Assembly: GCF_006345805.1 (NCBI RefSeq)
Contig: NC_043014.1
Location: forward strand, 27,156,001 to 27,220,000
Length of the DNA stretch: 64,000 nt
Origin: Octopus sinensis
Lineage: Eukaryota
Direction: 5' to 3'
Shown here piece by piece: positions 51,939 to 52,530 of the stretch (positions within the stretch are counted from its first letter, which is position 1; each line of letters begins with the position of its first letter). The position numbers and the translations under genes are program-made. A model generated the notes under the pieces. That model had not been told where the DNA came from and searched no databases. It saw only the letters and a list, made by a program, of their open reading frames with translations.

Positions 51939-52530
51939 TCACATATTGCTAATAATAACATCTAGGAAATACATGTTGAACATTTTGTAAGTAAGCCTTC
52001 CATTATATATTAAGTGTTTGGTTCTCTCAGTCAATTCCTTAATGATTTGTTCCTTGTTGATCATTGTAGACGGACTACTGGCACATGACTCCACCTCAAT
52101 TGGAGCACCTTCACACTCACACGGCCGTCTGCCTGGGCCAGCTAAGCAAAGTCGGAAACGACTTCGAATGCCATTCAAACATACGGACCATGGAAAAAAT
52201 ACACCCCAACCATCACAAACTGTTGTTGTAGCTGTTGTAGTTGTGGTAGGAGTTGTAGTTGTGGTAGGTGTTGTGGTAGGTGTTGTAGTTGTGGTAGGTG
52301 TTGTGGTAGGTGTTGTAGTCGGTGTTGTAGTTGTGGTAGGTGTTGTAGTTGTGGTAGGTGTTGTAGTTGTGGTAGGTGTTGTAGTCGGTGTTGTAGTTGT
52401 GGTAGGTGTTGTAGTCGGTGTTGTAGTTGTGGTAGGAGTTGTAGTTGTGGTAGGTGTTGTAGTTGTGGTAGGTGTTGTAGTTGTCGTCGTTTGGATATTT
52501 AACAATTCATTACATGATACTGCAGGATTG
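51939..52530 (-). CDS. Peroxidase-like probable last coding exon: NPAVSC end of the peroxidase domain, Thr/Pro stalk, TSP1-like module, short tail
   Basis: ctttttcttttacag acceptor, phase matches the previous exon, open to TGA at 51939-51941. A further splice near the 3' end cannot be excluded. Confidence 0.8.

Follow-up and report, generated by a model that had tools for sequence, protein, structure and literature searches.

What kind of protein is specified by a peroxidase-like gene in which a long run of threonine and proline codons separates the end of the peroxidase domain from a small cysteine-rich module? The 64,000-nt stretch of Octopus sinensis DNA analysed here, referred to as the window, carries the 3' part of such a gene on its minus strand. 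A first-pass annotation made from the letters alone had suggested a secreted scaffold or adhesion protein built on a peroxidase fold. We asked whether the gene model holds, what the C-terminal module is, where the Thr/Pro stalk comes from and whether the product is likely to be an enzyme.

The last exon starts at 52530, behind a strong minus-strand acceptor (tttcttttacag/C), and its reading frame is open as a single exon to the TGA stop codon at 51941-51939, in agreement with the exon structure and coordinates first proposed. It is completed by two bases left over from the exon ending at 54260. In order, it encodes the end of the An_peroxidase domain (NPAVSC), 90 Thr/Pro codons, a 45-residue module with six cysteines, a 47-residue tail and the stop. 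The features of the gene and of its downstream flank, in the order of transcription, are as follows.

62415-62907, minus strand: peroxidase exon, the first inside the window, encoding GDKRINE...RFDQ and containing the Asn found in place of the proximal His (splice sites, translation, tblastn with P0012 at E 4e-38, alignment with human myeloperoxidase [MPO])
59658-59867, minus strand: peroxidase exon, with Met for Asn and Gly for Asp of MPO LNMQRSRDHG (splice sites, tblastn)
57559-57725, minus strand: peroxidase exon with the conserved GDRFWYEN motif (splice sites, tblastn)
54260-54362, minus strand: peroxidase exon ending ...EPISA, with its donor at 54260 (splice sites, tblastn)
52491-52530, minus strand: start of the last exon, comprising the peroxidase end NPAVSC with its conserved Cys and the linker remnant NELLNIQ
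52221-52490, minus strand: Thr/Pro stalk, 90 codons (TRF, codon table)
52083-52217, minus strand: short-form thrombospondin type 1 (TSP1) repeat, 45 aa (hhalign, PDB profile search, AlphaFold2 with Foldseek, tblastn with the P0012 module)
51942-52082, minus strand: C-terminal tail, 47 aa, ending VIISNM
51939-51941, minus strand: TGA stop codon
51915-51920, minus strand: ATTAAA, candidate polyadenylation signal; its first base lies 21 nt past that of the stop codon
from window position 51340: AATAAA, second candidate polyadenylation signal

All boundaries of the four upstream exons are AG/GT, their phases are compatible and they join in frame, so that the five exons together give a product of 521 residues that is free of stops and frameshifts. 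Every one of the exons was recovered by tblastn with relatives, and the alignment with the relative P0213 runs ungapped through the 54260/52530 junction, which lends this splice indirect support. An open frame over 521 codons at about 45% identity to the nearest relatives argues for long-term selection to keep that frame intact. The window ends, at position 64000, short of the 5' half of the gene, which would encode the protein's own N-terminus and the distal haem pocket with its QFxDHD motif (distal His and Gln, and the Asp haem link). No further peroxidase exon was detected by tblastn between 62908 and 64000, nor were any other peroxidase exons or paralogues within the 64,000-nt window, and a search for RNA families gave no Rfam match. 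Within the exon at 62415-62907, 27 nt are duplicated in tandem with 2 mismatches (62783-62836, minus strand), which keeps the frame and adds nine residues that are absent from all relatives.

Several other features of the window lie outside the coding exons. Three transposable-element remnants were recognized, two with RVT_1 reverse-transcriptase reading frames (E 9e-27 and 1.5e-8) and one with a pogo/Tigger-like DDE_1 transposase (E 5.5e-27) accompanied by HTH_Tnp_Tc5.

49285-50508, minus strand: transposable-element remnant
20432-20956, plus strand: transposable-element remnant
9527-11145, minus strand: transposable-element remnant

In the intron between the exons at 57559 and 54362, two stop-free frames on the minus strand (55521-55943 and 56236-56478) have the same initial 62-residue translation, which suggests that a few hundred bases of the intron were duplicated in direct orientation. 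At 37635-37871 there is a GC-rich minisatellite with a 39-nt unit (6.1 copies, 89% matches), unlike the AT-rich simple repeats found elsewhere in the window.

The assignment of the upstream exons to the peroxidase family is clear. The joined product matches the Pfam An_peroxidase profile (PF03098) over positions 213 to 530 of 530 with a score of 286.8 bits, where the cut-off is 25 (E 4e-85), and human MPO at E 3e-48. The conserved structural motifs and cysteines of the domain are retained, as are the Arg and Glu of the GD-x-R-x-x-E motif (the distal Arg and the Glu haem link), which reads GDKRINE here and GDTRSSE in MPO. The proximal side reads differently. In the alignment, Asn occupies the place of the His in the MPO motif TSMHTLL, the proximal haem ligand His336, and Met occupies the place of the Asn in LNMQRSR, Asn421, the partner of the proximal His. 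In addition, RDHG has become RGHG, and the FRxGH segment is replaced by IMTMTATT. Asn is not known to serve as an axial ligand anywhere in the peroxidase-cyclooxygenase superfamily. By alignment with MPO, then, the proximal ligand is lost, as had been noticed on first reading of the sequence, and canonical haem binding has probably gone as well.

The six-Cys module behind the stalk had been described as TSP1-like but lacking the CSVTC segment, and profile comparisons and a predicted structure agree in identifying it as a divergent, short-form TSP1 repeat. When an alignment of eight modules from the family was compared by hhalign with 16 canonical TSP1 repeats, the two matched with a probability of 98.2% (E 5.5e-14, 42 columns), and a 4-column gap fell exactly at the SxTC segment. 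A profile search of the PDB with the module returned 31 matches; as far as the molecules were recognized, all 31 are TSP1-containing chains, among them thrombospondin-1 (1.9e-9), C7, C8 alpha, C8 beta, properdin, BAI1 and UNC5. The module profile gave 105 matches at E <= 1e-3 among 1.84 billion representative proteins, and those best matches that were scanned with Pfam are proteins made of many canonical TSP_1 repeats. The AlphaFold2 model of the module has a mean pLDDT of 87.5, and in a Foldseek comparison with the PDB, ranks 1 to 27 were occupied solely by TSP1-containing chains (components of the membrane attack complex [MAC], properdin, MIC2, F-spondin). The stronger of these matches reach a TMq of about 0.6 to 0.72, with E-values that are weak (>= 0.05) because the domain is small, at only 51 residues.

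Pfam by itself gives another picture. The first-pass annotation had proposed a Pfam scan of the joined protein, and the scan, while it returned An_peroxidase, reported no TSP_1 match in the tail when this was scanned in context. The isolated module of the window protein scores 15.4 bits against TSP_1 (PF00090; E 0.022), below the 21.6-bit cut-off, whereas seven of the eight family modules do match the profile, the best at E 4e-5. Reliance on Pfam alone would thus have led to the TSP1 reading being wrongly dismissed. The window module is 28 to 42% identical to the seven other family modules. Its aromatic ladder reads W-G-V-F-F-P-W, with Phe for the middle Trp, and its arginine ladder R-S-R-F-R. 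It has six cysteines, one canonical Cys having been deleted with the SxTC segment and another added in C-E-C-E-G (of the form C-x-C-x-G). The O-fucosylation motif C-x-x-S/T-C-x-x-G is absent from the module, its segment being deleted. The C-terminal TSP1 repeat of C8 alpha has this short form too (WSVCRAGIQERRREC), so that the fold is known to occur without CSVTCG.

The module is not peculiar to this gene. The nearest proteins are all from cephalopods: P0135 (the "peroxidase" of Octopus vulgaris), P0232 (the "chorion peroxidase" of O. bimaculoides), P0227 (Euprymna scolopes Q24926), P0226, P0012, P0213 and P0228, of which P0012, P0213 and P0228 are proteins from assembled sequencing runs (Logan assemblies for P0213 and P0228). 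As the whole-protein search was swamped by Thr-rich proteins, it was rerun without the stalk and with the family alignment. All seven relatives end with NPxVxC, followed by 8 residues and then a short TSP1 module, the layout of which within the family is C..W..W..C..R.R.R.C..C.C.G..E..C, with an N-terminal Cys and without the SxTC hairpin cysteine. The DL..W tail, which had been noted as missing, is absent from this cephalopod family as well and present in other mollusc peroxidases. On these similarities, we place the gene in the window as a divergent paralogue in a mollusc/cephalopod family of secreted peroxidases that includes Q24926.

Outside the cephalopods, a chiton protein (P0241) keeps the DL..W tail intact and has, behind it, the same short TSP1 module, with C-S-C-S-G, the sequences from Mytilus and relatives (P0237 to P0240) have a degenerate Cys-rich version that is missed by the module HMM, and in P0038 the peroxidase domain is followed by canonical TSP_1 repeats. 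Judging from these sequences, the fusion of a peroxidase with TSP1 seems to be old in molluscs. The first-pass annotation had not recognized the architecture, and this impression needs to be divided: the combination of peroxidase and TSP1 is widespread in public sequences (Q24926, O. vulgaris, O. bimaculoides, the three transcript-derived relatives, the chiton and P0038), but it has apparently been neither annotated nor discussed. The precomputed Pfam lists of the cephalopod members contain PF03098 only, and we found no description in the literature of the module in cephalopod or mollusc peroxidases or at the C-terminus of the Euprymna enzyme.

Within the family, catalytic residues have been lost more than once, as P0213 and P0228 have Tyr at the position of the proximal His and the O. 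bimaculoides protein P0232 has Arg for the distal His (FLMRDI). P0135, P0227 and P0012 keep the proximal His alongside the short TSP1 module. A neighbour-joining tree, calculated without bootstrapping, places the window protein on a long branch as the sister of P0213/P0228. Since this sister clade also lacks the proximal His and has the FRxGH segment replaced as well, the loss of canonical haem ligation would predate the stalk. The clade without the His is known from assembled mRNA-like contigs. Coding is uninterrupted in both contigs examined (P0012 and P0213); that of P0012 ends in poly(A), and that of P0213 is 2.6 kb long with one frame of 769 codons. In a collection of 5.8 billion clusters, identity to the product of the window gene nowhere exceeded about 47%. 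The locus looks unannotated, and it could be a silent gene. We noticed that P0227 (Q24926) has a low-complexity expansion of its own, a long Ala-rich region near the N-terminus (residues ~60 to 240).

What sets this gene apart is the Thr/Pro insertion alone; the rest of its layout, as far as the sequences compared here indicate, is the family norm. The stalk (52490-52221) consists of 74 Thr, 15 Pro and 1 Ala. The codon table resolves it into 15 Pro-ended units of the form T5P, T6P or T3P, as against the approximately 15 units of the original count, and one Ala-ended unit. At the DNA level, TRF reports an 18-nt unit in 14.3 copies and a higher-order periodicity at 30, 78 and 96 nt; the minisatellite units are 12 and 18 nt long and rich in ACN codons. 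The run is a true tandem DNA repeat and not a product of chance composition. It lies exactly where the relatives have their 8-residue linker, in frame and with both flanks homologous. Of 218 peroxidase-like sequences retrieved, not one carries a Thr/Pro stretch where a peroxidase domain gives way to a TSP1 module; a few unrelated proteins of the set have Thr-rich N-terminal linkers. As the relatives are without it, the stalk can be described as a lineage-specific coding minisatellite inserted in the linker.

The DNA units are almost identical, and the array is therefore young and gives no usable signal of selection. A reading of selection from the stalk codons, nearly all of whose variation is at third positions, was considered and dropped, because this variation amounts to a handful of events copied by the higher-order repeats. 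Since all units are 12 or 18 nt, growth or shrinkage of the array keeps the frame automatically. A microsatellite of about 50 GTT copies (AAC on the gene strand) lies some 170 nt downstream of the stop codon, at 51625-51773 of the window. It resembles the ACN-rich array in composition, and the locus seems to be prone to such repeats.

Behind the module, the 47-residue tail contains no transmembrane segment or GPI-like hydrophobic end, the highest Kyte-Doolittle mean over 15 residues being 1.07, which bears out the absence of such signals recorded at first sight. The tails of P0213 and P0228 resemble each other (E 2e-14). A homology of the window tail to these two had been suspected by eye; it was dropped after BLASTP gave no alignment with either of them, and tblastn found no better copy in the window. 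A Thr/Pro-dominated tandem repeat is a feature of mucins, and the relatives P0135, P0227 and P0228 start with hydrophobic, signal-like N-termini.

Taken together, these findings lead us to favour the view that the gene encodes a secreted and probably non-catalytic glycoprotein with a peroxidase fold, which carries a TSP1 binding module on a mucin-like spacer. We hold this to be reasonably probable. It has to be weighed against the possibility that the locus is a recently silenced or decaying paralogue, in which the array would be a neutral expansion of the microsatellite type and the architecture would be without function. The long branch in the family tree would fit such a decay, as would catalytic-site losses that exceed those of the sister clade (RGHG for RDHG, for example), the unconserved tail and the lack of a near-identical annotated or transcript-derived protein in the public collection. 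Furthermore, the window is full of simple repeats, including the 50-copy AAC/GTT array 170 nt past the stop, and an intact frame across the stalk is what 12- and 18-nt units preserve in any case. This does not sit easily with 521 codons in five exons that have stayed free of stops and frameshifts, with canonical splice sites, despite only about 45% identity to relatives, nor with the retention of the six cysteines and of the aromatic and Arg ladders in a TSP1 repeat that is modelled with confidence. The structural motifs and cysteines of the peroxidase domain have been kept too, and a 27-nt duplication in a different exon likewise preserves the frame. We consider silencing unlikely.

Two further explanations concern what the protein would look like or do. 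The array might be an exitron, spliced out of the mature mRNA to leave an ordinary short linker in the protein. A donor-like cat/GTAATG at 52513 could be paired with an AG at 52232 or at 52220, both in frame, and one of the products would read SNPAVS-FCDGWG..., but either product loses the conserved Cys of NPxVxC, and the candidate acceptors are preceded by the ACN repeat rather than by a pyrimidine tract, so that we regard this as very improbable. Alternatively, the protein might still be active as a haem peroxidase, by means of a different proximal ligand or a different mode of haem binding, with the stalk and the TSP1 repeat tethering the enzyme to a surface, as in matrix-bound peroxidases. 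The retained Arg and Glu of GD-x-R-x-x-E, the intact fold motifs and the proximal His of P0135, P0227 and P0012, relatives with the same module, would all be expected of such an enzyme. Against this stand the Asn in place of the proximal His, the Met in place of its Asn partner and the replaced FRxGH segment, together with the fact that no Asn axial ligand is known in the superfamily. On balance, a catalytically active product appears improbable.

To return to the reading that we favour, a coding minisatellite of 12- and 18-nt units has expanded in this gene within the 8-residue linker in front of the TSP1 repeat, giving rise to the 90-residue Thr/Pro segment that now separates the enzyme-like domain from the repeat. 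The product would be secreted, as suggested by the signal-like N-termini of its relatives, and its peroxidase-like domain would do without canonical haem binding. Judging from what is generally known of mucin PTS domains and TSP1 repeats, from which the steps of glycosylation, extension and binding are drawn, the Thr/Pro run could be O-glycosylated and form a stiff spacer of ~20 nm (90 residues at ~0.25 nm each). The TSP1 repeat would thereby be uncoupled from the globular domain and might bind ligands of the matrix, of cell surfaces or of microbes; such repeats serve for binding in properdin and thrombospondin. Rather than producing oxidants as an enzyme, the protein would then serve for binding or as a scaffold, in the manner of a mucin built on a peroxidase fold. 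A role in adhesion or as a scaffold, as envisaged in the first-pass annotation for mucus, egg capsule, skin or sucker cuticle, is a reasonable inference as regards function, while the tissues are conjecture.

A bolder version of this idea, which we put forward tentatively and regard as doubtful though possible, is that cephalopods have a clade of haem-less peroxidase-fold binding proteins, marked by Tyr or Asn at the proximal site, one of which has now become a small mucin, in which an O-glycosylated rod keeps the dead enzyme domain ~20 nm away from a properdin-like TSP1 repeat. Possible sites of action for such a protein would be mucus, egg coats and surfaces that are symbiotic or epithelial. 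If this were true, a corollary would be that the TSP1 repeat on the squid light-organ peroxidase could target that enzyme to surfaces or microbes.

Some consequences extend to the family as a whole. The mollusc peroxidase family, on the comparisons made here, carries a single shortened TSP1 repeat at the C-terminus that is missed by precomputed Pfam annotation, and the nature of TSP1 as a binding module suggests how the enzymes of the family could be targeted to surfaces. The window gene may be regarded as a natural experiment, in which the catalytic ligand is gone and a mucin-like spacer has been placed exactly between the two domains. Loss of the ligand together with gain of a spacer is what one would expect of an enzyme fold put to new use in a structural or adhesive role, and the stalk is an example of a coding minisatellite creating a spacer of domain scale in a linker. 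Current views are not overturned by this; the work is of value for annotation and as a source of testable hypotheses on the mucosal and symbiosis biology of cephalopods.

Several known systems can be set beside this protein. Q24926, which we take to be the Euprymna scolopes light-organ halide peroxidase of Weis et al. 1996 from the squid-vibrio symbiosis, belongs to the same family, with ~45% identity over the peroxidase part, and shares the C-terminal layout, in which NPxVxC precedes a TSP1 repeat of the short form with C-x-C-x-G. Unlike the window protein, it keeps the proximal His, has an 8-residue linker without a Thr/Pro array, a W-x-x-W motif, only 7 residues past the last Cys and, in its N-terminal part, a long region rich in Ala. 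The closest likeness is to P0213/P0228, the nearest clade in the tree, in which the proximal His is lost (to Tyr there and to Asn here), FRxGH is replaced (by VMDMT.AT there and by IMTMTATT here), the ladder has the form W-x-x-F/Y-x-x-W and a tail of about 50 residues follows the module. These proteins are nevertheless only 45 to 47% identical to the window product, their 8-residue linker has no stalk and their tails are dissimilar.

The TSP1 repeats of C7, C8 alpha, C8 beta, properdin and thrombospondin-1 would share with the window module, according to the profiles and the model, the fold and its layered Trp/Arg core, and in C8 alpha the C-terminal repeat likewise does without the SxTC segment, reading WSVCRAGIQERRREC at this point. 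The window module differs from them in its extra Cys (C-x-C-x-G), in the Phe for the middle Trp and in having no O-fucosylation motif, and the context is different too, as these repeats occur in MACPF or multi-TSR proteins. Peroxidases with adhesive partners are also known. Crayfish peroxinectin combines a peroxidase domain with an adhesion function, and Dictyostelium peroxinectin A was among the PDB matches of the window protein. In peroxidasin, the peroxidase domain is joined to matrix and adhesion modules of the LRR, Ig and VWC types (PMC3533774). Peroxidasin and peroxinectin have other partner domains than the window protein, and they keep their haem ligands and are active enzymes. Finally, the stalk is similar to the PTS domains of mucins in being a Thr/Pro-dominated repeat that is encoded by a minisatellite within one exon of a probably secreted protein, and it departs from them in being short, at 90 residues, in containing almost no Ser and in lying between two globular domains.
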